The translations under genes were made by a program, and so were the position numbers. Below the pieces are notes generated by a model. That model was given only the letters and a program-made list of their open reading frames with translations, was not told where the DNA came from and searched no databases. A stretch of DNA of 64,000 bases from Takakia lepidozioides (Eukaryota; Plantae; Bryophyta). Location: positions 25,792,001 to 25,856,000 of the forward strand of contig CM060731.1 of assembly GCA_030704615.1 (NCBI GenBank), given 5' to 3'. This document shows, piece by piece, positions 5,261-48,688 of the stretch. Every line of letters begins with the position of its first letter. Position 1 is the first letter of the stretch.

Positions 5261-5387
5261 GGTTGGCTCACCTTCCCACTCAAACCCTCAGAATCTGGCT
5301 GGCTATCATAAGGTCAGAGGCACTGCCATGACAGAACCCAGCTCTCCAATACTGCTTCATGTGCATCTCTCTCTCATGTCATGAAGA

Positions 5388-6390
5388 AAAACAATGCTTT
5401 GCCGCGTTATTAGCCCTGCCTTGGAGTACGCATCTGCAGTATGGGTTGATAACTCCAACCAGGCTGTCTCTAAGTAGAATCCATTCAAGTGGGGATGCTT
5501 GAGGATGCATGTCAGCGTGCGCTCCAAAACAACCAACGTGGCCGTTCGGGGTGAGTTTGGCATCCCTTCCTTAAGCTCCCGACGAGATGAATGCAAGGTC
5601 AGATGGTGAGATCAGCGACAACACATGTCCAACATCAGATACCCTAAGTTAATCGACTCTATATCTTGGAAGCAGGATCGCCCGGTCAAACAGGCTAAAA
5701 GTCCTGGCGGAAGAGAGTAGAAGAAATTCTAAGGATCTGAATCTAGGCCCGCAGGTCTTGTCCCTGCTTGGATAAATCAGACTTAGTGGCTGCCATAGTG
5801 TCCACAGCCACGTCTGTTGCCAGGAAATTGTATGATGAAAATGAAGTTAGTCAAGAAACTTCCCAAAACTTGTTTCCAGTCTGTCACATGCGAGAGGCCA
5901 TCACGGACATTGACCTCAAGGGTTTACCCACCCTCGGCACTAGACTGAAATTTAAACACAGGGCGGGAAGCCTACCTTTGAACAGCAAACAGATGCAGAG
6001 AGGAAAGGAGGGATTGCAATTGCCCGTTGTGTGGGCAACCTGAAGACAATATTCATTTTCTGATTCATTGTCCTGGGTACTCTCATGAGAGAGACGCCCT
6101 CTTCAAATCCATCAAGGGAATCGTGCCTGAACCTATGTTTGCCAACTTTGAAAGTCTCGAGGCTGAGCCAAAGGCCCATGCCCTTTTGGGGCCTGGTTAC
6201 TGGGCAAACCACACACAGCAGATTGATGCTTGTGGTGAAGGGATTTCTGGAGGATGTCTGGAAAACTCGGATTCGTCAGCCCCTGACAAAGGTAAGGTAG
6301 TTTCTGTCCCTTTATGTTCCGCTCGAACTGAGCGCCGGGTCAATGGCTACAAGGCTACGGCAAACAACGTCTTATGAGTACATTCTCTCT
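5388..6390 (+). mobile_element. 5'-truncated second copy of the same LINE (3' ~1 kb)
   Basis: Aligns by eye with ~3150-4168 (ATGCTTTG..CGTTATTAG.CCTGCCTTGGAGTACGCATCT; CGQPEDNIHFL). Both copies end in CTTATGAGTACATTCTCT. Confidence 0.9.
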
Positions 6391-6590
6391 AATGTCCTCC
6401 TCCCAATTCCGGACCTCTTCAGACTCAGACCGTCTGTGAGAATTGGAAAATTTTCCCCGCCTCCAATTCCCCTGGGGACAATTAATTTCATAAACTGTAC
6501 ACATGCATCGCATGAAATGTAACAAGAGCATATTTTGTGGTCCAGTGACGGTTTTGAACAGAGATCTCGAGCCTGAGAGAGAGACATTGC

Positions 6591-8742: not shown

Positions 8743-9970
8743 TATCTAGAGCTCTCACTCTTCGGTGCTGCAATTGCCTTTGGTCAACATGGGAATCTCC
8801 ACTGTCCGTTCTTCGTTGCTTGTTCTCCTTCACTACAGGGTGCCCTCAAATTTCAAGGTCGGTCCAGAACATCTCCAATTGACCACACTTAGTCACACCA
8901 TTCCACCTTTCCTGTTCCTCAAGCTTTCATGATGGAATCTTCACTAGAAACTAGAAACAATCCCCTTACCTAACCACTCTTGCTTGCGCTCTCTCGCTCA
9001 ATTCAGAACATACCCCAGCACTTGACCACTCCCATTCGTAACATTCCACCTTTCCGTCCCCCTTTTACAGATTCAAGCTTCACACTTGTTCTAGACCCAA
9101 CTGAGACCGCAGACCCATCTCATCTGATGAGACCATGTAGGGATCTCAAGTCTCGTCCTAGGCAGCTGACCACAAGGGAATAACAAGCATGTACAAGTCT
9201 TGAGAGCCTCCAAGGCTGTGTATAATATGCAGAGGATAACCGCAGCGATGGGATTCCGTGGGAAGACAAGAGTGGAGTGAGGGAAACCGACAAAACTCTG
9301 CAGCGGCGATCAACATCACATATCTCACACTCTCACTCCAAATTCTTATTTAAATTTAGATTCCAGCATTTTATTTTTTATTTTTTATTTTTTGGACATA
9401 ACAAGTTCCAAATATTATTATATCCGAAAAAATATTATTAAAATTATTATTTTAAGTCATAAATTGATCACAGCAGTGTCTGCAGGGAGCAGAAGAGGAC
9501 AATGGAATATTCTTATGAATAGCCTCATGATATTCTGGAATAATCTCGTTTCAAACAAAATCTGCTCACACAGAAAAAAATGCAAAACGTTGCTTGATGC
9601 ACAAGTGCAAAATCTGAAAGGACTGTATGCTCGTTTCCAGCATGTCAAATCTGCCCCACCCTCTCTTGAGAGTGACATGCTGGAACTGAAGGAGTGTAAC
9701 TCCACTTGGGATTAAAGTGGGTTATGCGAGGGGGTGTGTAACTCCACGCACAGAAGGGAGTGTAACTCACACTTGGTCTTGAAGTCCAAATGCGGCCAAG
9801 TATAAAATGGACTAAGAAGAGTCACAGGAGAGACATTGAAATTACAGGGGGGTCACACCGGCTAGTGTACCAGTATCCGTGGGTTACACTACAATAGCCT
9901 TCCATCAAAAAATCCAAACCGAATATCTCACCGCCAGCACTGCGATCACCACACCATCACGCTGACAAGT

Positions 9971-10252
9971 TGTAGGCCAGTGGTAAAGGGCATATACCAG
10001 GTCCCGAAAATGGAGGAAGGCCCCACACGTGGGCCCTTCTCCTGCATAAAGAACTGCCCGAGAATTCAACTAAAACATTAAAAAAATCGAAGTGTGGCCT
10101 TAGGAATTGGTAAGATCACTCCTCTGTTGCCACATGACCCTTAGGCTAATTCACTGGCAGTGGAACCTAGTTTGAAATACATAATGACAGGGTAGGTAGC
10201 ATTTGTGGAGCATCTTGCGCCGCGGAAGGTGCTCCCTTTAGGGGTCGGCATC
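9971..10252 (+). mobile_element. Degenerate relative of the SINE at 10812
   Basis: Shares TGTAG.CCAGTGGTAA.GGGCATATACCAGGT and GCTCCCTTT.GGG..GGCATC with 10812-10991. Confidence 0.35.
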
Positions 10253-10811
10253 CATTATGTGGCATTGGGGTTACATCTCTAATTCTGGTAATAATAAGAC
10301 CTCCTAGTCGTAAACTACGTAGCGAAGATTCCTTTCTATAACCTAATCCTTTTATTCTAACTTCAACCGACTTAATTCCTGGTCGAATAGCAGTTCACGC
10401 GGCATTCTGCAGTTGCTTGAGGAGCATAATTGGTTGAGCGACGAGATCCCTTGAACCCGGATGAACTTGAGGAGGACCAGAAACATCTGGGTGGCACTAA
10501 GTGCACTTTCCAACTGAGCTACCAACTATTGGTACCCAAATTAATTGAAAACACCTTTAAAATGGTCACTTTCCGTTGTCTAAGCCTACCATGCTAAAAT
10601 ATTATTGCATAAATGGAGTACTTCAAATCATTTGAAAAGGGTTCTTTGTATATCATTTCCTCAAGGAGGGTTTCATTAAACTTCCAGGCAACCTTTTTGG
10701 GCAGATTGAAAAAATCCACACCTTCATTGGACTTTCGCTACTTTACGAAAATTCAACTGACAACTCATGTCACCAAAAGCGCCAGTAGATATTAGGAGCC
10801 TCTTGACAACC

Positions 10812-10991
10812 AGCATGTAGCCCAGTGGTAATGGGCATATACCAGGTTGGATGTGGTTGTGGGTTCAAACCACAGTCTGGTGTGTCATGAAGGTGTCCAC
10901 CTTTCAGCTGGAAGGAAGTAGCCCTTGTGGTGAAGTGACACCATAAGCTACGCTCCCTTTGGGAGGCATCATACTTTACTTTACTTTACTT
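10812..10991 (+). mobile_element. tRNA-derived SINE-like element
   Basis: A-box-like TAGCCCAGTGG (10818), B-box-like GGTTCAAACC (10862), ~180 bp long, with a (TACTT)n tail. Confidence 0.6.
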
Positions 10992-11149
10992 CAGGAGCCT
11001 GCTTTTGCCTCCGTGGACTTGTTATAACGTGCCACCTGTTATATAGCCACTTTTCTAACCCTGCCACCTCATTACTCTCGCCACCCCGGCGCTGGCCGAA
11101 TCTACAAGTGGCCTCTGTGGCGATTTAAAATATAAAGCACTGGTTTTGT

Positions 11150-11345
11150 TGGGCGGGTCCCAGACTGGACCGGTGTCGGTTCTTTTTCAGTGTGTCAAAG
11201 TATACAGACCCGGCACTAGGATACAGGTGGACCCTGGTGAGCTGGACCCGGCGGGGGCCAAGTCAGCTTCATACCCTAGCTAACTGGCCGGGGCTGTAGG
11301 CTCAGACCCGGACCTGGACCCGGACCTGTCCCGGGGTCCAGGTCA
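11150..11345. repeat. GC-rich GACCCGG/CCGGGTC motif cluster (DNA-transposon subterminal-like)
   Basis: Many GACCCGG/GGACC copies; a similar cluster lies at ~18895-19020. No TIR/TSD pair found. Confidence 0.35.
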
Positions 11346-12376
11346 TGTTGTGATCCACTTTAGGTGTAGGTGTCTGGTTCTAACTTAGTTAAAATATTAA
11401 CATGTTCGCAGTCTCACACTTGAAGTGGATACGCGTCTCCATACGCTGCACTACTGCACCTATTCCCACCTCCCTATTGGTCGCTCCCACCGTCCCTATT
11501 TCCTTGACCTTCAAACTATTGGGTACATATACAGTAGTAGATCATAAGGAGTTACATGCTAGGATAATAATCCCTATAAGTATGCCTGTATTTTTCCAGT
11601 TTTTATATTTAATGAAATATAGAAATATTATTTCAAAGTCTTCAAAGGACTACTACCTATTGAGAACCAAGATGTGGGAAAAAAAAAAAAAAAAAAAAGT
11701 GGCACCCGGCAGTCCATGAGCTCAAAGCAGTGCATAAAAGAAGGCATCAACCCGGTCCTTCTCATCGCACTTATCATGACTCGCTAGACATGCCCAAATT
11801 TGGGAGTTCGATGTCTATCGCACACTGGGCTTTTGCTGCAGTGAATCTAAAAAAGGAAGAACACGGGGCGGGACGGAAGAATGTTAATCCTTGGGAGACC
11901 GCACCACAATCCGTTCTTGACAACACCGTCCTGGACAGTTGCTCCGGAGGTCATCCATTCCTTCCAAATTTTTCCGTGTTTAGATACGAATCAAATGCTC
12001 ATCCAACTCCCTGACTCGCTGCAAACTGCTCCAATCCGACAAGCTTCCTGCGGGCATGTAGTCCACGCATTACATATTCCGCATCACCTTCGCATTCAGC
12101 TCCTCACTTCAATCGCTCGGAATCTGAACTCGCCTACACCTAGATCTCGTCCTCTCACACCTTCCACGCACCGGCATCCTTCTGAACCCACAGCAAATCT
12201 AAGCTCCATCCTCTCTATTCAATGCACGCTGCACCGTCCCGATAGTTCCTGCACCTACTTATATATCAACGTCCACGAACCCAAGAGGGCACTCCCCAAT
12301 TCTGCCCTTCCATATGTGCTCACACACCGGCACAGACACACTGTCTACTTTTTTTCCTTATTTTTTTTTTCAGATA

Positions 12377-12622
12377 CAGGGTGTCTAGTGTCTACTCAAA
12401 AGTATCATTCATTCTTAAATTAGAGGATTATCACTCATTCTTACCTAGAGTGGGCCACTTGCACTACCCTACACCCAATATATATAGCCACTCGTACCCC
12501 TTTTCAAAATCCTTAAGAAAAACCCTGATAGGCATGTGCCACCTTTCAAAGCTCAATCGACATATTTGAACCAATATGGAATTAACATGTCGTTTGAACT
12601 TTGATTTGAACTATAAACCCTG
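12377..12622. mobile_element. Tc1/mariner-type MITE candidate
   Basis: TA|CAGGGTGTCTAGT ... ACTATAAACCCTG|TA: imperfect TIRs, TA on both flanks, 246 bp. Confidence 0.45.
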
Positions 12623-13409
12623 TATTGTTGCTCTCAGACTTGGACAGGAATGCCAAGTCTACAGTCTGGTCGCTGTTCTCTATGCATGAGGGCAGCTCTG
12701 TCCGCAGCACCCAAAAGTGTATCGCTATATCTCGCTATATCTCGCCGCCCACATTGATCATCTGATCTTTTGATCTACGGACTGCCCTCATGATCCTCTT
12801 TGATGCTAGCTTTTCTTTTTGTAAGCAAGTGCTTTCATTCATGCTGATCTAGCTTAGCCAGTAAATTAATCATCTCTACTCATGAAGCCTTGCGCGCTTG
12901 GAGTACAAAGAATTCTATTCCCTTGGGCGTGTATAGATTTTCTTGTGGATTCGAGCTCGAACAACATAGTTGGGGTTTTGAATTCGGCATCCCCGCTTTT
13001 GAATCTGTAATATGCTCTTTCTTTGACTAGCATCGATTTCAGCGGTGCTCTTTGAAGTTTGGTGGTCAGGCATATACCGTGTCAAATCAGGGCCTGCTTA
13101 GCTATGTCGATGACTCTTATATAATTTATATCCATCGCTGTTCACCCTGCTGAAACTAATGTATCACTTTCACCTAGCTGTACCGAATTAAGTACACGGT
13201 TACAGGAGGAATAATCGAACTCTTTAAGCTGATCACTTTTGTGAGATGGAGCAGCGTCTAATTGTCCAAGGCCTGCTTCTGCCTACTTGATCAGTGCGAT
13301 ATATTGCTACTGCAGTCCACCTCCAGCCATCTCACTCATGTGCTTGGGCTGAAACGCACTGTACGTGGCCTCCCTCCTGCTCGAGGCAGTAGTTCTTTTT
13401 CGGAAGCTG

Positions 13410-13670
13410 TGGTCCTGGTAAATTAAGTGCCTGATTTTGTCAAATATACTGTGCCGTCGGCGCTGCTGCTGTCCATCTACCCATGCAGGTCTCTTGTTAT
13501 AGCTATCGATCCACCGGAAGTCATACGTGATTTGGTGCTTGAAATTCGGCCCTCTTGGATCCACACCCTATCCCTGTTGCTGCAGCCATCCCTCCTCATA
13601 TATCCTCGTCTTGCTGCTTGCAGCCGACAACCACAGCCTAGAATTGTTCTAGAAAACACCCCAACCGTCC
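13410..13670 (-). repeat. Dispersed coding-like segment homologous to 58170-58440 and 59645-59820
   Basis: Peptide DPRGPNFKHQITYDFRWIDSYNKRPAWVDGQ here versus HPRGPDFKLHVTYDSLWKDRYKKPAWIDGQ at 58.3 kb; shared GAACAATTCTAGGCTGT. Confidence 0.75.
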
Positions 13671-14448
13671 TTGTCACACACTAGTTCCTAAGCTGAACTT
13701 TACAAATGTGCTGGCGAGGTCGAGAGGACGACAATGTCCAAGAAAGATCTACAGTGCATCTAGTTGTCTGCGTCTGATCTCTGTAGTCTAACAGGCTGCA
13801 TTGATGTATTCTGAAAGAGATGCCCTTGCTTTGCTGTCTACCCTATCCCATGAGCTCCGGTGGATGAACCGTTATAATGTTGGAGTCGTTCTTCGTTTCC
13901 CTTACTCCATACTCGCAAGGTTTAATGATCCATCTGGACAACGTTCATGTCATGACTACAATGGCCTGCAATGCATTAATATATTCTCATATTCCCCCCT
14001 GATTGGGTACTCAATATGTATTAAGTAAGCTGGCACCAGATAAAGTGGAACTGAACCGTCACTTACGAACTACAGATCTTCTAGGAGTTAGATAAAAAGT
14101 TGCATAACCGTCTGAAAAGGAAACTAAGCGCGGGTTAAGCGCCTTGGAAAGATACATCTTGGACTAGAAATTTTATATTAAACCGAAAAGCCAACAGTCC
14201 AGCACCAGTTGAGCAGCCGCCAGCCTGGATCAGAACAGAACTCACATCCTCAAAACTTCTTAAATTGCTTACCGTACGCAGTGGCAAATCTTGTGGAGAA
14301 CTTGATTGTAATTAACTCTGATCTGAAGGGAAGGGCGAAAGTGATCAATGCGTATACTTTGTGGTGGCTAAAGTGGGGCGTCCGAGAAACTTTATACCTC
14401 TATCTAGAGACTGATGCGCAACGAAAACAACACAAGACCAGTTTTGAC

Positions 14449-34819: not shown

Positions 34820-36016
34820 TTATTGATGTGTAGCTCGGAGCTTAGCTGGATATCGTTGATGAAACTCTTGGACTTTGTCAGAGGCATTGGCGAGATTGGA
34901 TGAAGGTTCCTACGTTCGTTCGCTGATGTCGTAGCCTTTCCAATGTACGAAATACTCAAGACGTTTATACTTTGATGCGAGAGTCTAGGACTTCGTCGAC
35001 TTCATACTCAATTTCCTGATTGACTTCGATTGGTGGAGGTGATACGGAAACTCTCCCTGGAATATTCGATGGATGATACAACTCCAATAATGAAACATGA
35101 AAGACTGGATGGATGCACATACTTCGTGGGAGTTCAAGCCGAAAACTGACCGGATTTATTTGTCGAATAATTTTGAATGGTCCCAGACGTTGATAATCCA
35201 ACTTCTTTGATGGTCGCGAGGTTTGTATGTCCCGTCGAAGAAGCCACACACGGATTCCGACCTTGAACTGGGGTTGGAGTTGGCGACGTTGATCTGCATA
35301 CTCCTTGTATTGTTTTTGAGCTTCTGCGACGTATGATGTAAGCTCCTTGTGAATCGTAGCAAAATGAGTAGCAAGGGTTTCTACAGCAGGTTCCAACAGT
35401 TTTCATGTAGAAAGGGTTTGCTCAAGGATGATGACCATAATTGGAAAAAAATGGAGTTTGTTTGGTCAAAGAATGTATAGTGTTGTTGTAGGCAAACTCA
35501 GCCAATGACAGAAGGTCCGTCCAATTATCTTGGTGATAGTTCATCGTACAGCGAAGATACTGCTCCAAAATCTTGTTTACACGTTCGGTTTGACCATCAG
35601 TGTGTGGATGATTAGCAGTAGAGAGATTGATCTTAGTATCCAATATGTGAAATAATCCCCTCCAGAAATTTGATGTGAATTATGGTCCTTGATCAGATAC
35701 GATGTCCTTCGGGAGTCCATGAATGCGGTAGATATTATTGAGGAAGAGTCTTGCAGTTTCCTTGTTGGTAACCGTCTTATTACATAGAATGAAATGTGTC
35801 ATCTTCGTAAAACGATCTACAATAACAAGGATTGAATCGGTGGACTTGAAAATCTCCGTAATAAAGTCCATAGACACGGACGACCATGGACCCTTGGGAA
35901 TGGGTAATGGTTGAAGAAGGCCGTAAGGTCGATGTCGTGGTCCCTTCGCTCTAGCACACGTGTCGCAAGATTTTATAAATTCTTTCACGAGTTTCCACAT
36001 CTGCGGCCACCAATAG
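34820..36016 (-). pseudogene. Gypsy integrase core + chromodomain (decayed)
   Basis: YWWPQMW...CDTC...GLLQPLPIP..PWSSVSMDFI, IVSDQGP, HPHTDGQTERVN, GPFKI, HPVFHVSLL, EYEVDEVLDSR...YFVHWKGY. Confidence 0.92.
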
Positions 36017-36224
36017 CCTAGTTATCATTCCTGACGTGACGTGGCGCTGACACATCCGACGTGCGTCACATCACGTCGAATCCGGACGTTTACCCATGTA
36101 ATTTTTTTTTCATTTGACTTTTACGATTACTTCTACCTTTTGTAATGACATGGCAGCCACGGTGTAAAACAGACGTGGCCAATTATTAATATTTATTTAA
36201 AAAAATTAAAAATATATCCGTTTC

Positions 36225-36530
36225 TATTGGCGGTCGCATATAATTTATTATTTTTAATAAAAGCGATCGCCCATATTGGCGGTCGCTTGTAATTTAATAT
36301 TTTGTTAAATTAAGCGACCGCCAGTATTGGCGGTCGCCGGTAATTTATTTATTTTTAAATTAAGCGACCGCCCATATTGGCGGTCGTCCGTAATTTATTT
36401 ATTTTTAAATGAAGCGACCGCCCATATTGGCGGTCGCTTGTATTTTATTACATTTTAAAATAAGCGACCACCTACATTGGCCATGTGGCGGTCGCTCTTC
36501 TTGTTTTTATAAATATAACGACCGTCATGC
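36225..36530. repeat. Left subterminal array of palindromic AAGCGACCGCC-N5/6-GGCGGTCGCTT units (~50-bp period)
   Basis: About 6-7 units separated by A/T tracts. Confidence 0.9.
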
Positions 36531-36835
36531 AGCTGTCGCGTATTTTTTTTTCCTTAAAAATCGAGGGACCCGCCGTGTGGCGTTTTGTTTTTTATTTTTA
36601 ATCATGAAGCGGCGCCTCGGCCAGCCACGTGGCGAGGTGCCACGGGTCAGGAAAAATGAAACAAATGAGATGGGGAGAGGTGGTTTTAAACCCTTGACCT
36701 CTCCCATATGGGTGCGCGTGGCGAGGTGCGACTGGCCTGTCGCGCTGCGCTGACACGTGGCGAGGCGCCACTGGCCTGTCGCGCCTTTTCAAGCATTATG
36801 CCATTTTTCTTTTTTGGGGGGGGCTTGTGGGCGCC

Positions 36836-36843
36836 TATATAAA
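36836..36843 (+). promoter_or_regulatory. Putative TATA box of the kinase gene
   Basis: TATATAAA followed by a pyrimidine-rich tract, ~320 bp upstream of the ATG at 37161. Confidence 0.4.
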
Positions 36844-37160
36844 CCATTCCCCCCTCCTTTTCTGATCACTTTTGCCCCTCTTGTGGTGCGGTTCTTTGGC
36901 ATCCTGTAGTCCTTTTCGGACTTCGTTGCTTGGACACTGCCAACGGGAGGTACAAAGGTGGTTATTTGGGGGGGAGGTTTTGTCGATTTTCTATTGGTCA
37001 GTCCCACACATTTGTTCATGGTACAATCATCGTATCACCATTTTGCCGTTTCCGGATCTCCGGCGGGCTGTTTTTTGGCAGAAAACTACGAAGACACCAT
37101 CCACACGCGTTCATTGCCATTTTCTGAGGTTGGACCCTGTAGTGGGCCAAGGTTTATACA

Positions 37161-38512
37161 ATGTCGGGGGTTGTGAATTCAAGTTCTGGGGCGGGATTGT
37201 CTGGGGGGCGGATAAAGAAAAAATGTGCCCACGAGCGGGATAGTCAGGTCAACAAGCCAAACTACCCGGGACCGGATGCCTTGGATAGGGTGAAAGAAGT
37301 GGTAGTGGATTATTTCAAAGGTAGGGACATGATGAGGCTGGAGAGTGCTTATGTTAGGCATGGATGGGAGGGGTTTCAGATTTTTCAACAAAATATGGAG
37401 AGGAAAATGACAAACGCTTTGGCGGGGGCTAAGTGGATGACCGAGGGTCGAGTGCCCTCCGCCGAAGCTGAGTTAATGCGGCGTGTTGAGTATTGGGCTT
37501 GCTCGGCAAGCCAGAATTCACATCGTTGGACTAGGGTTGTCCCTTAGAAGGCGGGGTCATCGGGCGGCACAACTGGTCTTTATTACCTAAATTCTAGTGT
37601 GAAGGTGATAGAGATTTTCCCTTACAAAGAGGAAGGGTATGCTAAGGTCCGCCACTGTAGGATTGTTGGCCTTTCTACAATACCGGAGCGTTGGGAGCTA
37701 GCGGGGAAAAAACCCAAGTCCAAAAATCCAGAAAAGACGTTGAGATAACATAACGACGAATGTTTGGCAGTGAAGTTCCAGCATCCGGGTGTTATCTCAT
37801 ATTTTGCTGTTAATGCACGTGAGGTAGAGGGTTACACTCGCAGGTGGAATGGGGGGATAATACGCGACATGATGAACCTTGACAGAAAATAGGGCAACGA
37901 TTCGGACAACAGGGTGATTTTGGAACAAATGGGAACGGAAGCATAGTTCCAAGAATGTGATTGCTTGCTTCGTTTCCGGAAAGTGCGCAGTAAACTTGCA
38001 TGGGCACTGGTGTGCATCATGAATGTTGACCACAAGAACGGTGTCATGCACAACGACTTGTCCCCCGACAACATTTTGTTGCATTTTCCAGATGGCACCG
38101 AGGAGATCAAGATTGGGGTGTGTGATTGGGGCTTAGCCATCCCATTGGGCATACGCAAAGCCTCGCCATACCAGTTTGAAAACCAAGACAAGCTAGACCG
38201 GGAACTCGCGAAAAGATGGTGGGTGGAAAAAGATATTGCATCGGTTTTCAATGCAAATGTTACCCCCCCCCCCAGGACATGACGTCGGAGGCCTTTGCCG
38301 TTGGGAAGATAGCGGTACGAATAAATGGCGGCGCTCATTATGATCAAAGTATGTTCCAGGACCAATTTACGGGAGGTTGTTAGCATTCAATGCTACAAAG
38401 GTTGTACGACAACAACAAGAATGAGAGAGTCACATTAGCCCATGTAGTACTTCGGTTCATGGACAAGCCATTCAATTGGCCTGAGCCGAAAGACGTATAT
38501 AGGACGGAGTAG
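37161..38512 (+). pseudogene. Protein kinase-domain gene, intronless, disrupted by stops and a frameshift
   Basis: One frame from 37161 to 38282 through 4 stops gives EEGYAKVR (G-loop-like), ELAGK, NDECLA, QHPGVI, WNGG, HNDLSPDNILLHF (catalytic loop), VCDWGLA (DFG equivalent) and RWWV. After a poly-C frameshift it continues SEAFAVGKIA...ERVTL. Confidence 0.85.
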
Positions 38513-38595
38513 ACCATAGTCTCGTAGATATGAGATTTCTGGCGGTACAATGGTTCTTTTATGAAGACATAACTCAATTTTGATCGTGCATGTAA

Positions 38596-40181
38596 TAAAT
38601 AAAGTCTCATTGTAAATACTACATTGCATATGCTCGACCCTGGCACCTGCCATCGCAACATAAATGGTTTGTGTACTGGCTCACTGTTTATATTTGTAAT
38701 GTTCCAAGGTTTCGGATAGGGTTATGAGAAAACGATGTATTAGTTCCGTAGGAGTTAGACAACAAACGTCTCATCTCATTCAACTGTGCAACACTACCAT
38801 GAGAGGCATGGATCGGAAAGTAATAGGTGCACGTGCGACCTCCGAACGTTTGATACTAGGTCTCTACTTAAACGTGCGGAGGTCGCATGTACACCTATTA
38901 CTTTTTTATCCATGCCACTCATGGTAGTGTCGCACAGTTGAATGAGATATGGAACGTTTGTTGTCTAACTCCTATGGATCCAATATATCATTTTCTCAGT
39001 ACCCTGTCAGAAACATTGAAACATTTGTAGTTACAAACAGTGCCACAATACACGGCCGGTTTTGTTGAAATGACATTTGTGAGGTTCGAGCGTATGCAAT
39101 TTATTATTTACATCGGAATTTTATTTACTCGGGGGACCAGTACTGCTGTTGGAGCGCAACTGATGGTGTGAGTTATCTATTGATTGGAGCTGTCACAACC
39201 AATGTCAACAATCATATTTACGGTAAGGTGTTTCATGCTATTGTTGTTCCTCTAGCTGAATTCTTTAGTACTGTTTTTGCTATTCCCATGCCAACGTCCT
39301 CTGAGACTATCATGTTCAAACGGACGTATCAGCCACCCCGGCCAGCTTGCAGGCTACAGCCATGGCCCACCATAAATTGAATGAATTGGAGATTTTGTGC
39401 GAAGTTCATGGTTTCATGTTCGTGGTGGCTGATACGGAATTCGGAATATAGCACTCGCAGTGGACCTGATGTTGTTGGTATGGGAGTAGCAAAACAATTC
39501 CTAAATAATTCAACTACATGAACATCGGTAGTATGAAACACCTTGCAGTACATATGATTCTTGATATTGTTTGCACGGATTATTTGTGTTTGTGCTTTCA
39601 AGTGGTGAACATTTCCGCCATAGTACGGAAGACGTGCATTGGCCACATTAAACGGTTGATGTGATATCATTTCACAAATGTATCATATCGCATTTGTGAA
39701 AATGTATCATATGAACCGTTCCATGTGGCCTACGGGAGTCTTCAATGGGTACGAGATCAATGTGGCATACGAGATCTGCTTCCACCAACAAACATGTGAT
39801 CATTTCAGAAGCGCTAGAACTTTGAAGCGACGATGGACAAGGTTCTTCATCCAGATGTTCAATATGCTGAGGTCTTCTGTAATGTCTCTTGCTTCGTAAT
39901 GAGGTGCTTCTCCAACTCTTATTTTTTCAATGCTAATATCTTCCGTCTGGAACATATCCACACATACGTATATAACTTTAAAAAACAAATGACCATCAAA
40001 ACTGGAAGCTGGGGATGAGGCTTATAAAAGTTGAGATGGTTATTTGTTTTTTTAAGGATTTCTGTACACATATGTGGATATGTTCAAGGTGGAGAATTTT
40101 AACATATTGGATAAAGTGGACATGGAGAAGCACCGCATTACGAGGCAGGAGACACTACAAAAAGAGCTTCAAAGGGCATAT
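38596..40181. repeat. Four consecutive long imperfect inverted repeats (hairpins)
   Basis: 38596-39127, 39200-39569, 39628-39743 and 39862-40181. Arm pairs such as TAGGAGTTAGACAACAAACGT/ACGTTTGTTGTCTAACTCCTA, CGTATCAGCCACC/GGTGGCTGATACG, TTTCACAAATG/CATTTGTGAAA and GAACATATCCACA/TGTGGATATGTTC. Confidence 0.9.
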
Positions 40182-40189
40182 CATGTAAC

Positions 40190-40600
40190 AGGTCCCAGTA
40201 TAATCGAAGACGAAACCCCATTCATTCAATGGACGATTGAATGGTTGCCCATCCAAATGATTTTCGTTTGCTTTCAATCTTTGCCACTATGTTCAACATA
40301 CCATGTATCAAGTCCCGAATTAATATCAGATCAATCGAAATTCATTCGATGGCTCAACGGATGGTTGGCCATCGAAATGATTTTGGTTCACTTTGAGACT
40401 TGGCCATTATGTTCAATGTGCCAAGTAAGAGGCCCCAGAGTAATATGAGATCAATCGAAATTCGTTCAATGGGCCAACGGATGGTTGCCCATCCAAATGA
40501 TTTTCGTTCGCTTTGAAACTTGGCCAGTGTGTTCAATGTACCATCTGATACGTCCCAGTGTAATACAAGATCAATCGAAAATCGTTCGATTGTCCAATGA
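40190..40600. repeat. 120-bp tandem repeat, block 1 (~3.5 units)
   Basis: TCAATCGAAA recurs at 40331, 40451 and 40571. Confidence 0.9.
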
Positions 40601-41229
40601 GGCGTTCACTTGTCATCGGGTTTTTGTTCAATGCGAAAAAAAAATCCTGCAATGCGAGCACGACTATTGCACCCATTGAACGGATGTGGTTGAAGCCCTT
40701 CTTTTGCCCGCATGTGTGCAACACATGTGCGGAGACACAACAGACGAATAAATCATTTGCCTCCCCATCGACGCGCTCCCCCCTCAAGCCTTTCCACAAT
40801 TTAATTTAATTTAAATTTATTTTAAGCCAATAAATAGGTTTGCACTGCCTTTCAGTGGGGGTTTCTAGCACGTATCAATCTTGTTTTTGGCTCAATGTTT
40901 TTCTGCGGCTTCCAACATCCCACTGCTACTCCCCCGCCAAAATTTGGACCAACAAAAATGCCCCAAAAAAAAAGTGTTCTCTTCACTCACTATTGGAGAA
41001 CTCTCTATGAAGAGTGCATGAAGTAGAACACAAATCAAGTTTGGAGTGCAAAAAAGAGAAGAAACTGTGGTTTTGGGTCCAAATGAATTTTGATCACTCC
41101 CAAATTTGGCACGCACGTTGCATATGGCTACATTACACGCCACATTCAAAAACAGAATGAAAAAAAAATCGTGAGCACGCGAAACACAGTCCAACAGGCC
41201 CCCAAGCAATAGTAGCTCCAGCACAATAC

Positions 41230-41590
41230 ATTCAACGGGTGAACAGATGGTTGCCCATCCAATTTTTTTTTCTTAGCTTCCAATCTTTGCCAGCACGTTC
41301 GAGACACCCTCTCACAGGTCCCGGATTAATATCAAATCAATCGAAATTCATTCGATGGCTCAACGGATGGTTGGCCATTGAAATGATTTTGGTTCGCTTT
41401 GAGACTTGGCCACTATGTTCAATGTGCCATGTAAGAGGCCCCAGAGTAATATGAGTTCAATCGAAATTCGTTCAATGGACCAACGGATGGTTGCCCATCC
41501 AAATGATTTTCGTTCGCTTTGAAACTTGGCCAGTGTGTTCAATGTACCCTCTGATACGTCCCAGTATAATATGAGATCAATCGAATTTAT
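41230..41590. repeat. 120-bp tandem repeat, block 2 (~3 units)
   Basis: TCAATCGAA at 41337, 41457 and 41577; unit-for-unit copy of block 1, offset by 1006 bp. Confidence 0.9.
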
Positions 41591-42036
41591 TTTGTGCTTT
41601 GAGAACTTTGTGGGTATGTTCGTAGAAAGATCATAGATTTTGCGAAATGATTATGAAATACGCAGAGACCAGGCAAAATTTGTTTGGAAGACGACCGTTC
41701 GTAACTCGTTATAACTTATTTGTTAACATCAATTTTCCTTGTTCTCCAGCTTTCGGAGTTCATTGCGAATACCCACATACACGTCATGACCAAATATGAC
41801 ACCATTGTAAATTTGTTTACAGTGTGAACTACTTCTTCCCCATCACACGAGTGTAAATGTGAAGAAAACGTTACTTTTGCAATTGAAATTGGCAGGTGCA
41901 GCACATGTGCATCGTGTATTAACAAAATTGGTGATATACAAACTTGGCGGAATGCCATCACTGTGTTTTCCAACAATATTCAAGGTACAACAAAAATGCA
42001 TATTATATATGTACTACGATGCCAGTCATTAAAAGC

Positions 42037-44305
42037 CTAGTCGTCACTGTCCGAGGATGTGGAATTTGATGTTGTGGCCTGATTTGCACTGCCAATTGCT
42101 AGAGCTTGCGACCATGATTTCGTGGTCAATGAGGGGCCCAATGACATGTGATCAATTCTGGCCGGCATCTGCCTACTTTGCGGCAAAAGTTGACTTTCTT
42201 CTTCACTCTCACGACATGACGGAACAAGTGTTCGGGCTGCATGCAAATCGGCAACGAGGCCGTCCATATCCGGCAATACAGCCCCCGAAACACGATGAGA
42301 ACGGTCTGTTCATAATCGCCTCCATTTCTCTACAACTGCCTTGATGGTACTTTTGAAACTTTCCAACTACTTCTCGCGGGCTCTATCCCTAATCATTGTG
42401 TCGTTTCGACGATAAGCCGCCTCGTACGCATCATGAATTCGGCGTTGACATATTATAGCATCTTCCAGTTCGGACAACAACAAATGTCTCCCAATCGGTT
42501 GTCGGTCATACAATTCGTTCTCCTCCGGCACCCATGGAACTTCTGGGAGCCGGATAAACCTGGACCTTCTTTGACTCCAATGCCCTCCCAGATTGCGGCA
42601 AAACTCATCTCTCTCCCACCAATCTCGAATACCTCCCGCACATATGGTTATCCCCCAATCAGATGTGATCCAGAAATACTGGGGATCTTTGATGTATGCC
42701 GGGTTTCTGACATGTATGCCATGCATCTCTCTGTCTACATCCCATACCAAGTTCTTGCCCCAATGCACACAATTCAGAAATGTGTATGGTAGCCCATCCA
42801 ATGAGAGGTTGTGTCGATTGTACTCAAAACCTATGGGCATCCGATCCTCCAAGCCCACCAGCTCATAGAAATGGCAATGGATTGGTGTACGGCATTCTGG
42901 GCAAGCGCTCGTCCGCAAGGCTTGCGGGATAAGACATGTGAGATGGAACATATGTCCACATGATCCAAGCACATGACATCCCTTTGGGCCGTATGGATTC
43001 CTACACATCGAACAAAGTGTGCCATCTGATATCCATGACGGCAAAACTCCTCGTGGTATCTCCTCCCTCTGGGCTGGTTTGATGTGGCTGGTCATCTTTG
43101 TTGTGGTGTCCCACTTTTCCTCTATCTCCAATTCCCAGTTTATGCTTCTGTTCGACCCCAAAATTCTGTGCTCACATCGATCGAACATAGAATCCACATC
43201 TGCCCAATTGGTATACCCGACGAACACGCTTGATGCGATGCGGAGATCGTTATACCTTTACATGTTGGCATAAATGCTATTCACGCTACGGATCGACATG
43301 CGTGCGACACGTTGCAAGTCTGACAGTGCCCGCTCTACCCGTGCTTCTCTGGAGGCCAAATGGGTCGCCCATTATACCCAATTTTCTCAATCGCCATTCA
43401 ATGGGACCCATGCCTGAATCTCCAGCGTTTTGGACAAGCGCCATGCAGTTGCCATGACAATGTCCCGCTCATTTGTAACGGGTCGACATCTAATATCGGG
43501 TTCATCTCTGATTGAATGGCGACCCTCGAGCATTCCCCGGTTTCCAGTACTGGTTCTTTTCATTTTCTCCTTCTTTCATCCGCAATTCGTTGTTCCTCAA
43601 CCATGGTTTCATCGGCCACAAGGTCAATGACGTCCATAATATCCTGAATGATGAGGTCAATACTGCGATCGGGCATCGCAAACTCCGCGTCCATGTCCAC
43701 AACGTTTGTACAACAGTGCCTTCATTGTTTGGAGGCATGTCTTGTAATCTAGCTTCCAACTCGGCTATGCGCAGTGTTTGCTAGTCTAGTCGGTTCTGCA
43801 GGGTCCTGATTCGCTGGTCTCTTTCCGCTAGTTGTTCTTCTAACGTTGCAGCCGATTGTATTCCGAACTTGTCCGGGATGTACTCCAAATCGTATAACAA
43901 CCTTGCGTTCATCCTACTAGCAGTTTGCCAATTCACTGGACGCAAGAGTATGACCTCCACGTACAACATGGCTGCCTAGGTGTACGAGATTTGACCCTTT
44001 AAGAGAGGTTGACCCCACAATGTCCTAGACCTAGACTCTGCGTAATTGTTTCGGGTTTGCACGTCATGCCTATCCAAAGGCCACAATCGATTGATGTAGT
44101 ACAATTTCACGAATTTTTTGCATCTCGCCATCGGCCACCAGAACTCTTCCAGAACATCATCTCAGCCCTCTTCTGCTAGTATGCTAGGGTCACCATATAC
44201 TTCCCAATTCAAGTCTTGTCTTGACCCTTTGATTTTCTTAGGGGGCGGTCCATGTTCATTGGGGTCATCTCTTCCATGACGGTCATCGTCCTGGCCCTCT
44301 GCCAT
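42037..44305 (-). pseudogene. RING-H2 zinc-finger protein gene with coiled-coil region, disrupted
   Basis: Starts MAEGQDDD...PPPKKIK; has a heptad-like LEEQLAERDQRIRTLQNRL..RIAELEARL; the 286-aa intact stretch contains CSMC-x-CGHMFHLTC-x-CPEC (C3H2C3). Several stops/frameshifts. Confidence 0.8.
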
Positions 44306-45091
44306 TCTACAACAATCAAAACAATACTAAACGAGGTTTTCTTAAAAAACTTTACTTTAAACCCTTCCCCCGCTAAGTAGGTTTGTACGTGTCAAAATAG
44401 TTCCTAAAAGCTAATTTTGTAGAATAAAATGATCCTGGAAGCCAGAGGAGGGCCTATAGCAGCATTCTGCAACGACCTCAAGAGTCGCCCTGAATACTAA
44501 TCGAGGCATCCTGACGAGAAGATGAAGTGTTCTGCTCAGAGGTCATGTCCAGATTCAAAGACATTGGAATATTGCCTCTACACTGAGCAAAGTGGTTTTT
44601 TACCCACATAGATGCTTTACCCCAGCGCTCTTCACACTTTTATAGCCGAGGTGAGCGAACAACCGATCCTTACGATAAGAAAGCTTTAATCCACATAGGT
44701 TGCACTCAACACTACCAGTGGCATTGACAATATTCGGGATTGCCGTATATCAAGGGCTCCATTCCTCCCTCATCTTCACCTAATATCCATTCCCCTGGGA
44801 CCTAGCGATGCAAGCAACAAAAAACAGTCACCTATAAATGAATGTGTTGTGAATGTAGAGTGCAATGCGATAGCCCAACACTTCTACACCTATCAGCAAC
44901 CCAAGTGGGTCGATGTGGGTTGTAGTGTTGAGCTTATACACAATCTTCTGAAGTGGCTTTGGTGGAAACCACAACGGCAAAAGGTGCGCACCCTCCTCTT
45001 GGGCTACACTCTCGTTCAATGGAAGAGAACATCCAAAACAACCTCAAGTGTTTGCGCCAAAAGAAGTGAGGAGCTTGGTAACCCTCCTCCC

Positions 45092-45098
45092 TTATATA
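45092..45098 (-). promoter_or_regulatory. Putative TATA box of the RING gene
   Basis: TATATAA on - immediately inside the right array, upstream of the RING ORF. Confidence 0.35.
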
Positions 45099-45204
45099 TG
45101 ATCCAAGATGGATGAAAGTGAAATGAAAGTGAAATGAATAAATGACGAACCAAAAGCACCCACCCGAAAAAGGCTGTATAACCATATTTGTTGTAATTTT
45201 GAAA

Positions 45205-46395
45205 TTAAGCGATGCTAATACTAAGGTCGCTATTTTTATTTTTTATGAAAAACAAGCAACCGCCACTACTGCGGTCGCTTTTATGTCCTTTCATTTTGTG
45301 CAATATTGCGGTCACTTCTATTTTGTATATTTTTAAATTTAAGCGACCGCCCGTATGGCGGTTGCTATTGTTTTTTATTTCAATATATAATGCGATTGCC
45401 GGTATGGCGGTCGCTTCATTTGTTAATATATTTAAAATAAAGCGACAGCCAATATGGTGGTCGCTTTTATTTTTAATATTTAAAAAAAACGCGACTGCCA
45501 GTAAGACGGTCATTTTTAATCTTTATATTTTATGGCGGTCGTTTGTTTTTCTATAATTTTTTTAAATTAAGCGACCGCCCAATGGCGGTCGCTATTTTTA
45601 TTAATATTTTTGAAATTATCTGACCGCCATATGGCGGTCGCTTGTTCTGTACATATTTACAAAATTGTGCGACCGCCAATACGGCAATCGCTTGTTTTCA
45701 TTTTTAAATTAGGCGACCGCCAATGCGACCGCCAATCTTGTTTTTTTTTAAAAATAAATTGAAGCGACTGCCAAGATAGCGGTCGCTATTTCTTTTTTTA
45801 ATTTGAAAATTAAAGCGATCGCTAGTGCGACCACAAATCTTGTTTTTTTTTAAAACAAATTTGAAGCGACCGCCAATATGGCGGTCACTATTTCTTTTTC
45901 TATTTCGAAAAATAAAGCGACAACCAGTGCGACCGCCAATCTTGCTTGTAAGAAAAAAAAATTGAAGCGACCGCCAATACGGCGGTCGCTATTTCTTTTT
46001 TAATTTCGAAAAACAAAGCGATCGCCATAATTGGCGGTCGCGTTCAATTTGTTAATTTTCAAAAATATATTTGCCACCGTGCGACCGCCAATACGACCGC
46101 CAATCTTGTTCTAAAAAATAAATAAATTGAAGCGACCGCCAACATAGCGGTCGTTTTTTGTTTTTTTAATTCGAAAAATAAGGCGACCGCCAATGCGACC
46201 GCCAATCTTGCTTTAAAAAAAAAAAATTTGAAGTGACCGCCAATATGGCGGTCGCTATTTCTCGAAAAATAAGATGACCGCCACTGCGACCGCCAATCTT
46301 GCTTTAAAATAAAAAAAAATTGAAGTGACCGCCAATACGGCGGTCGCTATTTTTTTTTTTAATTTCGAAAAACAAAGCGAATTGGCGGTCGTGTT
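45205..46395. repeat. Right subterminal array of GCGACCGCC-based palindromic/direct units (~25 units, ~50-bp period)
   Basis: Same motif as 36225-36530; A/T-tract spacers. Confidence 0.92.
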
Positions 46396-46584
46396 CATTT
46401 TGTTAATTTTCAAAATGTATTTGCCACCACCACCGTATCGGCGACGTGGCTGCTTAAGTGGCAGTATTTTACCTGGTACTATTTTTACCAAAATATTTCC
46501 CGAACCTGACGTGACGGAGGTCCCGTCTGCATCAGGTCAAACGTGACCTGACGCTGACGGACGGACGTGACGCTGATAACGGGG

Positions 46585-48688
46585 ACCAATAGTCCATGGA
46601 TATCAATTCCATTGTTTTGTTGAAGCCGAAATGTCCTGCAGCCGGAAAATCATGACATGTTTGAAGAATTCGAAGTTGTGTAGGTCCTGGAGGTACATAG
46701 AGAAGTCCCTTGAAATAAAGTAAGCCATCTTTGAATTCAAAGTCGTTTGTAATATGTGGGTTGTCTCGAGGTCGATTTAGTTGACTTCGTAGTGTCGTAG
46801 CAAAATGGTCGCTCTTCAGTGCTTCCTGAATCTCCTTTATGATTTCTACATCGTCATAGGTGGACATAGATAGCATATTCAATTGGAGATTTGCTGGTTT
46901 CAAGATGATGGATTTTTGTTGGTCAAAAGCTGCATCCCCTTCCTTTGGCGCAAGATACGATCGTCGAGAAAGAGCATCTGGTTTCCTTGAAGATGTCCGG
47001 GACGGTAGGTAATAACAAAATCAAATCTTGCTAGTGACATACTCCATCTCGCTTGATGTCGATTCAAAACACGAGCACTTATAAAATACTCGAGGTTTTT
47101 GTGATCAATATAGACAGTGACATGATGTTGAGCTCCCTCCAATAGATGACGCCACTCCTCAAAAGCATCGATAATCGCTAGAAGTTCTTTGTCATGGATT
47201 TTATAATTGATCTCCGCAGCGGAAAATTTGCGAGAACGAAAACCAACAGGGTGAAGTCGGCCATCTGTACCGTATTGAGAAAGTACCACGCCAAGTGCAA
47301 AGTCCGATGCATCTACTTCCAAAAAAATGGTTTAGATGGGTCTGCATGTACCAGTATTGGAGCCGTTGTAAATGTCTGCTTCAACCTTTCAAATGCTTGG
47401 TCAGCCTTCTTGTCCCATACAAATTTGTCCTTCTCTGTAAGTCGTGTCATTGGTGCAGCAATTTTGGAGTAGTTCTTGATGAAGATTCGATAGAAATTTG
47501 CAAATCCTAGAAAACATTGTACATTTCGGACCGAAGTTGGTTTAATCCACTCGATGATGGTTTGTATTTTCTTCTGATCCATAAAGACTCATTTGTCGAA
47601 AATAATATAGCCAAAAAATTCGACTTCAGATTGATGGAAAAGACATTTTTCCAACTTGGCATATAGTCATTTTTCTCTCAATTTATCAAGGACAAGGCGT
47701 ACGTGGCGACCATGTTCTTCTTCACTTTGTGAAAATATCAAAATGTCGTCCAAATAGATAACTACAAAGTCATCTAAAAATTCTCAAAATATGTCATTCA
47801 TCATGTGTTAAAAAATTGCTGGAGCATTTGTAAGACCGAAAGGCATAACACTGTATTAAAAATGTCTGTATCTTGTGCGAAAAGCAGTCTTCCATTCGTC
47901 TCTTTCTTTTATTCGTACAAGGTTGTAAGCTCCTTTCAAGTCGATCTTTATGAAAAAATTTGCTCGTCCAAGTTATTCGAGGAGTCCGGAAATTAGCGGT
48001 AGTGGGTACGATGTTTTATAGTGACTTTATTGAGCCCACGATAGTCCACACACATGCGTACTGATCCGTCATTCTTCTTCACAAATAAGATAGGTACTCC
48101 CGTGGGGGATTTCGAATGTCGAATGAAATTCTCTGACAAATTTGACAAATTTTCATCAATGTATTCGCGTAAAGCAGCCAGCTCCGTCTGAGATAAATTG
48201 TAGATCGGGCCGAATGGTGGTTGAGCTCATTCTTGCAACTCAATTACAAAATCATAAGGTCGATGTTCTGGCAACATGTCTGCATTTTTCTTCTTGAAGA
48301 CATCCTTGAAATCTTGATATTGAGTGGGTAATGTCGAAGTACCTTGGTCTGCTGTGGTTTGATCGGAGTTGCATAAAGTGCAAATGTCGCGTCTTTCTTC
48401 ATAGCTCTCATGAAGGCTCTAGCTCCAAGAAACAGGGGTTGAATATCTTTGGTACTTTTGCATTTTTGTTTTGCCGAATTTTTTCGTGATCGCCAGTCGA
48501 TGTCAGGATTATGAAGTACAAACCAGGGAAGTCCAATGATCATAAGATTTGTTGGAGACTGGATAACATTGAAAATAATCTGTGATGCTTGATCTTTAAG
48601 CTTCACTTCAAGGGGTCGAGTTTCATGGTCAATATTTCTTGATGCTAAAGGTCGTCCATCGATGACTTCAACAAAGGCCGAGAATTTC
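46585..48688 (-). pseudogene. Gypsy pol: protease C-term, RT, RNase H, integrase HHCC (decayed)
   Basis: IIGLPW..HNPDIDW; VIYLDD (~47750); FLGFANFYRIFI; [27 protein letters not shown]; CHD..AAGHFG..KT. Confidence 0.93.

Follow-up and report, generated by a model that had tools for sequence, protein, structure and literature searches.

A decayed, probably transposase-deleted hAT element carrying kinase and RING-H2 pseudogenes

An insertion in a Ty3/Gypsy integrase gene

The window (the whole 64-kb stretch of DNA that was analysed) contains a 10.6-kb insertion at positions 36017-46584 (10,568 bp), which is flanked on both sides by a perfect 8-bp target duplication and has the following boundaries.

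36009-36016: left copy of the target-site duplication, ACCAATAG
36017-36027, plus strand: left terminal inverted repeat, CCTAGTTATCA, resembling the (C/T)AGGGTTGTC ends of related elements
46574-46584, minus strand: right terminal inverted repeat, reverse complement CCCCGTTATCA
46585-46592: right copy of the target-site duplication, ACCAATAG

The element split a Ty3/Gypsy integrase gene within its zinc-binding domain. In Pfam searches, positions 2-31 of the Integrase_H2C2 profile were found on the right flank and positions 39-57 on the left flank, with RT_RNaseH, rve and SH3_Tf2-1 domains around the split domain. When the element and one copy of the duplication were removed, the minus strand (read by hand) was rejoined as ...ISMDYWWPQMWKLVKEFIKSCDTC... 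and the integrase frame was restored. An earlier note, made from the sequence alone, had proposed a one-piece insertion with an 8-bp duplication into this gene, and these results support the same conclusion, namely a DNA transposon that was inserted in one piece.

The terminal inverted repeats are imperfect, as the earlier note had described, and agree at 9 of their 11 positions. Both the 8-bp duplication and the short terminal inverted repeats (about 5-27 bp in hAT elements) are as found in the hAT superfamily. The hAT end sequence (C/T)A(A/G)NG is not present, the element starting with CCTAG and CCCCG at its two ends, and the duplication ACCAATAG agrees with the loose hAT target consensus nTnnnnAn at the A only.

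Subterminal zones, palindrome arrays and TATA boxes

Inside the inverted repeats, the two ends of the element carry similar non-coding features.

36028-36100: left subterminal zone, rich in GACGT/GTGAC, likely bound by transposase
36225-36510: left GCGACCGCC-N6-GGCGGTCGC array, 50-bp period, about 5 copies, upstream of the kinase gene
36836-36843, plus strand: TATA box TATATAAA, 325 bp upstream of the kinase ATG
45098-45105, minus strand: TATA box TATATAAG, 325 bp upstream of the ATG of a transposase remnant
45250-46420: right array of the same palindrome, GCGACCGCC-N6-GGCGGTCGC, periods 49-102 bp, about 20 half-site pairs
46490-46573: right subterminal zone, rich in GACGT/GTGAC

Both tips, previously described as TGACG/CGTCA-rich, are indeed dense in GACGT/GTGAC-type motifs, with six to seven inside 150 bp of each end, as in three related loci (L016, L018 and L020), and are likely to be the transposase-binding ends. 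The palindrome arrays are also real: the 8-mer core occurs 32 times in the window, always within 36229-36487 or 45344-46384, and the expected count of the full palindrome in 64 kb is 0. The arrays lie about 270-600 bp upstream of both start codons and are internal in relatives too, and they appear to be promoter or regulatory modules, not transposition ends. Comparison of the regions upstream of the kinase and of the transposase remnant detected nothing alike except the arrays. A TATA box had been reported just inside each array and both boxes are present, but the right array and its TATA box (45098) head the transposase remnant, not the RING gene.

Kinase and RING-H2 pseudogenes

Two genes point inward from the ends of the element.

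37161-38510, plus strand: protein-kinase pseudogene with HNDLSPDN and VCDWG motifs, four in-frame stops and one frameshift
42040-44305, minus strand: RING-H2 pseudogene, ATG at 44305, with at least seven in-frame stops, at least one frame change and a shortened middle

The identities and the inward orientation given for these genes in the earlier note were confirmed, but both are pseudogenes, and its description of them as apparently full-length does not stand given the stops and frame changes of both and the shortened middle of the RING gene. Each begins at its own ATG and is colinear with its relatives from residue 1.

The kinase frame (37161-38279) is interrupted by stops at 37545, 37746, 37890 and 37944 and by a frameshift near 38200-38285. 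The HNDLSPDN and DWG motifs are kept in this broken frame, which scored 28.6 bits with Pfam against a cut-off of 31.7. A homologue at the related locus L020 passed the Pfam Pkinase cut-off (38.3 bits) and displays GGFGIV, HNDLSPNN, DWG and APE motifs; it is 38.5% identical to the product of window positions 37587-38198 (E 9e-34), and HNDLSPxN and VCDWG are common to both. No match to the kinase pieces was found by tblastn in any relative but L020, and a sequence search of the PDB with the L020 kinase gave no match. Judged from its motifs, the cargo kinase is a divergent predicted protein kinase.

The longest open piece of the RING pseudogene spans 43257-42370, and its middle region is about 275 codons shorter than that of its relatives, whose ORFs are complete at 1000-1200 aa. 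The eight zinc ligands (C-x2-C ... C-x-H-x2-H-x2-C ... C-x2-C) are invariant in an alignment of 11 sequences (A1), and a ligase role is predicted. One relative passed the zf-RING_2 cut-off, the Pfam matches being otherwise mostly sub-threshold. A homologous-protein search with the 296-aa RING ORF returned no match, a result made uninformative by the length window of the search, and an AlphaFold model of the RING and C-terminal domain (mean pLDDT 55) was too poor for fold comparison. A metagenome scan with the RING alignment recovered short contigs only, with no context, and for P0001 and P0002 the contigs were too short or without DNA.

Hairpins, tandem repeats and family copies

The region between the two genes is occupied by two kinds of repeat.

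38690-40170: four long fold-back hairpins between the convergent genes, seen in other family copies too
40190-41600: two 120-bp tandem arrays (40241-40597 and 41242-41585) around a spacer of about 640 bp

The hairpin cluster and 120-bp repeats of the earlier note were thus recovered, with z-scores of -26 for the hairpin at 38690-39035 and -11 for that at 39185-39585. The hairpin region displayed no similarity to the remaining window or to the family proteins, and no Rfam family matched within 35000-47500. Because the number of contigs and their summed depth, which is not a copy number, are far higher on 40190-41600 than elsewhere on the element, this segment is probably a repeat of its own, commoner than the element in which it is nested.

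Comparison with assembled contigs of the source organism was made over 35950-41949. Contigs with 80-99% likeness cover the whole of this span, indicating a multi-copy family, and the kinase region is present throughout them. Three of the kinase stops (37746, 37890 and 37944) occur in this copy alone, since every source-organism contig that covers 37746, 37891 and 37944 reads another base there. A in the window corresponds to G in the family at 84 places and T to C at 77; the opposite differences number 22 and 32, respectively. This copy has gathered mainly C>T and G>A changes, which broke all three of its reading frames.

A hAT transposase remnant

The third reading frame lies upstream of the RING gene on the same strand.

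44484-44773, minus strand: 5' remnant of a hAT transposase gene, about 100 codons, with an N-terminal CxxC...H...C zinc-finger region, one stop and one frameshift
44306-44483, minus strand: zone separating the RING start from the last codon still recognisable as transposase; it would have to hold the internal deletion junction

Among 67 related hAT transposases (DUF659 plus Dimer_Tnp_hAT), 35 match the minus strand at about 44776-44484, and they do so by their residues of about 3-100 only (best match P0183, E 2e-9); residues beyond about 100 of the 67 proteins match nowhere in the window. The N-terminal motif of the remnant starts none of the seven full-length RING proteins inspected. The element was previously said to have no recognisable transposase, which holds for the catalytic domain, as searches of the element found neither a DDE nor a hAT catalytic domain, but not for the 5' end of the gene. 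On these alignments, the transposase appears to have been lost by deletion and not to be unrecognisable.

Pfam searches of the element's longer ORFs on the two gene strands found no MULE DDE, THAP/P, Merlin DDE or KDZ/CxC transposase. Membership in the Mutator-like, P, Merlin or KDZ-Zisupton groups was rejected, the transposases of these classes being absent and the sole transposase trace being of hAT type.

Linkage of the cargo genes to hAT transposases in related loci

The earlier note had suggested examining the linkage of kinase and RING homologues and the dN/dS among copies. A RING homologue adjoins a hAT transposase in all six related loci (L002, L016, L017, L018, L019 and L020, on contigs from other samples). 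The kinase was seen in one of these loci only, L020, where it is joined to both genes in a set comprising the transposase, two RING genes and the kinase. Values of dN/dS were 0.19 for RING (L002 versus L001) and 0.25 for the transposase (L002 versus L016). Since gene order varies among the relatives (convergent, tandem or divergent), an arrangement with the transposase directly upstream of the RING gene is unproven for this family.

The ends of the relatives read (C/T)AGGGTTGTC and are followed by the same kind of GACGT/GTGAC-rich subterminal zone. In L016, L018 and L020, TAGGG or CAGGG is followed by TTGTC, where this copy has GTTATC instead, and by this comparison the CC..GTTATC end is a variant of the lineage end (C/T)AGGGTTGTC and not a canonical start. 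No similarity at the DNA level was found by blastn of the element ends against the relatives. A search for a duplication and inverted ends around the relatives bounded no complete element; the left end of L018 was not found and the other contigs stop earlier.

GC-rich motif arrays precede each gene in the relatives too, and in L002, L003 and L016 the 8-mer GGCGGTCG/CGACCGCC itself is found ahead of the start of the RING gene, the transposase gene or both. Variant arrays were found in L016 and L018, and in L020 a further array separates the transposase ATG from the end of the element.

Origin of the element

The 8-bp duplication, the DUF659-type remnant and the (C/T)AGGGTTGTC ends of the relatives place the element in the hAT superfamily and not, as first suggested, in an uncharacterised family or superfamily of DNA transposons. 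Derivation from an element encoding a hAT transposase (RNase-H-like core plus hAT dimerisation domain) is indicated by the remnant and the six linked loci. The intact transposase ORF of an autonomous hAT element is absent, and because the gene is missing beyond about 100 codons, the unit is very probably a decayed, internally deleted, non-autonomous hAT copy, from a lineage whose complete members would encode a DUF659/hAT-dimerisation transposase, a RING-H2 protein of about 1000-1200 aa and, in this sub-lineage, a divergent kinase.

The following course of events is proposed, in which the ancestral gene order, the exact deletion breakpoints and the deletion size are inferred. An internal deletion would have taken about 900 transposase codons and probably the RING gene's own upstream array too, leaving the transposase promoter (array and TATA box), the first 100 codons or so, the RING gene, the hairpin cluster and the kinase gene. 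Cut-and-paste insertion into the Ty3/Gypsy integrase gene made the 8-bp duplication, and movement would have been possible only with transposase supplied by full-length copies.

Alternatively, a full-length autonomous copy may have been inserted first and its transposase deleted later in place, so that the deleted form never transposed, an order of events to which we give somewhat less than an even chance. Internal deletions accumulate in silenced elements, and this copy is old and heavily mutated; on the other hand, hAT elements with an internal deletion and both ends retained are the classic case of a form that can still be mobilised, Ds from Ac being the example. It is highly improbable that the retained N-terminus was once a truncated repressor-type product, like KP of the P element, and that the derivative was selected as a regulator: the promoter array, TATA box, ATG and whole zinc-finger region are kept, which would suit such a role, but the remnant holds one stop and one frameshift in this copy.

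Pack-type capture, in which a non-autonomous hAT element would carry, as incidental cargo, pieces of ordinary kinase and RING genes taken from the host, deserves very little credence. Plant DNA transposons often capture genes, and both genes are broken in this copy. Against it, every one of the closest RING relatives either neighbours a hAT transposase or comes from a short contig, metagenomic or transcript-like, and none was given a host-gene name at source; the relatives' ORFs are complete and their dN/dS is low; L020 links the same divergent kinase type to a transposase; the kinase region extends across the family contigs, with three stops confined to this copy; and both genes run colinear with their relatives from the start codon. 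Host-gene fragments varying between copies were not observed. Because of the RING-transposase linkage in 6 of 6 loci, the L020 kinase and the RING dN/dS of 0.19, the kinase and RING genes are regarded as dedicated cargo of the lineage, as the earlier note had held against a random Pack-type origin.

An uncharacterised superfamily, with a transposase unrecognisable or absent by design and kinase and RING as its sole genes, would account for the missing catalytic domain and for the CC ends, atypical of hAT, but is the least credible reading in view of the hAT N-terminal remnant behind the right array and TATA box, the ties of RING and kinase homologues to hAT transposases at other loci, the canonical (C/T)AGGG ends of relatives and the hAT-like duplication.

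Comparison with known elements and significance

As a decayed hAT derivative, the element resembles the maize Ac/Ds system in its 8-bp duplication, short imperfect terminal inverted repeats and short repeated subterminal motifs; Ds, an internal deletion derivative of Ac, is likewise non-autonomous and needs transposase in trans. The element differs in that its ends are CC and not (C/T)A and in that its transposase is of DUF659 type with a different N-terminal zinc finger. Furthermore, Ac encodes a transposase only, whereas the lineage described here adds a kinase, a RING-H2 protein, a hairpin cluster and palindrome arrays upstream of each gene. In textbook accounts a hAT element has a single gene, and a kinase plus RING cargo is unusual for the class; literature searches turned up no published account of this gene combination in a hAT element.

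ToxhAT, a 14-kb fungal hAT transposon carrying ToxA, is also a large hAT-type element with non-transposase cargo. Its cargo is a recently acquired fungal host-interaction effector, whereas the kinase and RING genes are conserved across divergent plant-associated lineages under purifying selection. In Arabidopsis, the Mutator-like element VANDAL21 reportedly encodes an anti-silencing accessory protein, VANC, that binds arrays of short motifs within the element's own copies. By analogy, an accessory gene beside the transposase and element-specific short-motif arrays in non-coding DNA are seen in both systems, and VANC might serve as a model for how the kinase/RING cargo acts; VANDAL21 belongs to the Mutator superfamily, makes a 9-bp duplication and has a VANC that is neither a kinase nor a RING protein.

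The kinase and RING proteins are putative lineage-conserved accessory proteins, which would probably modify host or element proteins in the element's favour; a role in host silencing, which the earlier note had considered, is speculation. More specifically, a plant-associated hAT lineage may keep a kinase and a RING-H2 ligase under purifying selection, each behind lineage-specific GC-rich motif arrays with a GGCGGTCG core common to several distant members, as a self-regulated system that phosphorylates and ubiquitinates host silencing or repair factors or the transposase itself, with deletion derivatives keeping the accessory module and borrowing transposase. This full proposal is doubtful at present. 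Selection on the lineage genes spans divergent members and several sample sources, and the upstream motif array of each gene is conserved.

Taken alone, this copy is dead and ordinary. Its transposase-less form is best explained as a Ds-like deletion derivative of a cargo-bearing hAT family, the lineage end consensus is now (C/T)AGGGTTGTC with the variant CC..GTTATC in this copy, and the GGCGGTCG promoter-array core common to distant relatives provides a concrete candidate binding site. If purifying selection maintains both a kinase and a RING ligase in a hAT lineage, this would suggest a new route to host manipulation or self-regulation by DNA transposons.

Insertion site and ends of the element

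The element, which carries a protein-kinase pseudogene on the plus strand and a RING-H2 pseudogene on the minus strand, is bounded as follows.

36017-46584: element, 10,568 bp
36009-36016 and 46585-46592: 8-bp target duplication ACCAATAG, directly flanking both element ends

A scripted scan for an exact 8-bp duplication combined with inverted ends found this pair, and its only other hits were array-internal artefacts. When the element and one duplication copy were excised, the minus strand ...ISMDYW joined WPQMWKLVKEFIKSCDTC... in frame (read by hand), and Pfam placed positions 2-31 of the Integrase_H2C2 profile in the right flank and positions 39-57 in the left flank. The in-frame join and the division of this domain between the flanks confirmed insertion into a Ty3/Gypsy integrase, as the earlier note had described. 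The host gene around this domain carries RT_RNaseH upstream and rve and SH3_Tf2-1 downstream (Pfam). The element was inserted by cut-and-paste with an 8-bp duplication. The host Ty3/Gypsy element (34965-36000 and 46593-47600) is decayed too: several pieces (RNase H, integrase and SH3_Tf2-1) are still open, but stops interrupt the element.

The left element end is CCTAGTTATCA and the right end, as reverse complement, is CCCCGTTATCA, with 9 of 11 positions identical. A degenerate end pattern that had to be accompanied, within 150 bp, by four or more GACGT/GTGAC-type motifs was matched at just five sites: the two element ends and one end in each of three contigs from other samples, L016 (TAGGGTTGTC), L020 (CAGGGTTGTC) and L018 (CAGGGTTGTC as reverse complement). 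In each of these contigs the end sits just outside the transposase gene. The ends of the wider lineage are therefore canonical hAT ends, of which the CC..GTTATC of the element's family is a variant. Because both element ends carry the same variant bases, these bases probably characterise the family and are not damage acquired after insertion. The canonical (C/T)A start is the sole hAT feature that the element lacks. The subterminal GACGT/GTGAC repeats are putative transposase-binding sites.

Remnant of a hAT transposase

The RING ORF matched a family of 1000-1200-aa proteins, including P0001 (45% identity, E 3e-63), and another family member, P0155, adjoins on contig L002 a 1048-aa protein with DUF659 and Dimer_Tnp_hAT domains. 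hAT transposases were thus reached via the RING protein, and a search with the L002 transposase yielded 67 relatives. No recognisable transposase had been reported in the earlier note; however, 35 of the 67 relatives matched one place in the window, 44776-44484 on the minus strand, with residues ~3-100 only (best match P0183, E 2e-9), which identifies a 5' hAT transposase remnant. Residues beyond 100 of the 67 relatives had no match anywhere in the window. The alignment begins M-REEWSP, followed by a stop at the position of the relatives' W, a CxxC...YRKDRL.AHLGY...C zinc-finger region and, after a frameshift, a ...KAS..VK..F..C.GN.P... block; the seven full-length RING proteins compared all lack this motif at their start.

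The transposase body has been lost from the element. Only ~180 bp separate the last recognisable transposase codon from the RING ATG. A deletion whose junction falls within 44306-44483 appears to have taken out ~900 codons of the transposase, probably along with the array that lay upstream of the RING gene. P0220, a hAT transposase of the same clade, is labelled in NCBI as belonging to a 'Bacilli bacterium' MAG, a label that probably reflects eukaryotic contamination of the metagenome bin.

Decay of the cargo genes and other family copies

The cargo genes had been described as apparently full-length, which is contradicted by their stops, their frame changes and the shortened middle of the RING gene. 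From its ATG at 37161 the kinase can be followed in one reading frame, with in-frame stops at 37545, 37746, 37890 and 37944, and comparison with the L020 kinase placed a frameshift near 38200-38285. The RING gene (minus strand, ATG at 44305) aligns colinearly with P0001 from the first residue onward and contains at least seven in-frame stops and a frame change; its middle spans ~140 codons versus ~415 in relatives, and its open remainder is only a 296-codon piece (42370-43257). All three reading frames, including that of the transposase remnant, are decayed.

Public contigs of the source organism and of one plant metagenome, with at least 80% likeness, were compared over 35950-41949, all of which they covered in thousands of pieces, 80-99% alike. 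Because the underlying runs hold just 170-250 million letters, the assembled contigs must represent repeated sequence. One contig matches 36012-36189 and then diverges into unlike sequence; it belongs to a further copy, which has this left end in a different flank. At positions 37746, 37891 and 37944, every covering contig differs from the window base; of the four kinase stops, three are thus unique to the window copy. Where the family has G, the window has A at 84 places (22 in reverse), and where the family has C, it has T at 77 places (32 in reverse), an excess of C>T and G>A that is the decay pattern expected for a methylated, silenced copy.

Linkage of cargo and transposase in relatives

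Related contigs from other samples carry RING and hAT transposase genes in the following arrangements.

Convergent RING and transposase: L002 and L016
Tandem, RING first: L017
Divergent RING and transposase: L018
Transposase and, ~9 kb downstream, a RING homologue: L019
Transposase, RING-like gene, kinase and RING: L020

The L020 kinase, which scored above the Pfam Pkinase cut-off, is 38.5% identical to window 37587-38198 (E 9e-34), and in both kinases HNDLSPxN replaces HRD and VCDWG replaces DFG. No kinase was found in the relative loci besides L020, which suggests that it is restricted to a sub-lineage. The L020 locus (980-14267 of metagenome contig ENA ERZ27253065) is a four-gene hAT unit in which the transposase is accompanied by a 654-aa kinase and two RING genes, one of them a 724-aa paralogue; its CAGGGTTGTC end lies at position 387.

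The dN/dS ratio was 0.19 for RING (L002 versus L001, a further related contig) and 0.25 for the transposase (L002 versus L016), so that the constraint on the accessory RING gene is at least equal to that on the transposase. The closest RING relative, P0001, is a complete 1077-aa ORF on a transcript-like 3.7-kb Logan contig of SRR11670876 with short flanks; if SRR11670876 is an RNA run, the RING gene is expressed somewhere.

Arrays, TATA boxes and internal repeats

The palindrome arrays, the hairpin cluster and the 120-bp repeats seen earlier were all recovered. The array core GGCGGTCG/CGACCGCC has 32 copies in the 64-kb window, every one of them within two arrays, 36229-36487 and 45344-46384, and the full palindrome GCGACCGCC-N6-GGCGGTCGC gave 5 matches versus 0 expected. 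Compared with shuffled sequence, the hairpins show much stronger folding (z = -26 and z = -11). The 120-bp repeats form two tandem arrays at 40190-41600 (~3 units each, 84% alike) around a ~640-bp spacer. At ~40150-41600, far more source-organism contigs and summed depth were found than in the rest of the element, although contig depth does not equal copy number; because contigs pile up there, this region is tentatively regarded as a separate, very abundant repeat, probably nested in the element.

A TATA box just inside each array had also been noted, and both were located; the right one, however, heads the transposase remnant.

36836: TATA box of the kinase gene, exactly 325 bp upstream of the kinase ATG
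45098, minus strand: TATA box of the transposase remnant, exactly 325 bp upstream of the remnant ATG

Since the TATA-to-ATG spacing equals that on the kinase side, the right array and its TATA box constitute the transposase promoter. The upstream regions of the kinase gene and the transposase remnant share no DNA similarity outside the arrays.

The same core occurs in three relatives, every time upstream of a gene start, and variant GC-rich arrays occupy the same relative position upstream of genes.

L002: core, 6 copies, each preceding the start of RING or of the transposase
L003: core, 3 copies, upstream of RING
L016: core, 2 copies, upstream of the transposase
L016 9400-9700: variant arrays CCGTCCGCC / GGCGGACGG
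L018 9100-9470: variant array CCGTCCGATCC

A different GC-rich array also precedes the L020 transposase. The other motifs at the equivalent site in L018 and L016 show that the array motif differs among lineages and that its position is retained. Because the L018 array lies far inside the element, in the interval separating its divergent RING and transposase genes, the arrays are best read not as transposition ends but as promoter or regulatory modules, which would drive or coordinate the transcription of each gene.

Classification and possible role of the cargo

In conclusion, the element is a non-autonomous member of the hAT superfamily, and this copy is dead and derives by deletion from a three-gene (kinase, RING and transposase) hAT family. 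No published description of such a family was found in the literature; the family is a variant within the known hAT superfamily. For any mobility the element would have needed transposase provided in trans, in the way that Ds relies on Ac. No close solved structure was found for the kinase, and the structure model was too poor to inform the putative accessory role. The kinase and RING proteins would be accessory proteins serving the element; their possible targets are the transposase or host factors of silencing or repair.
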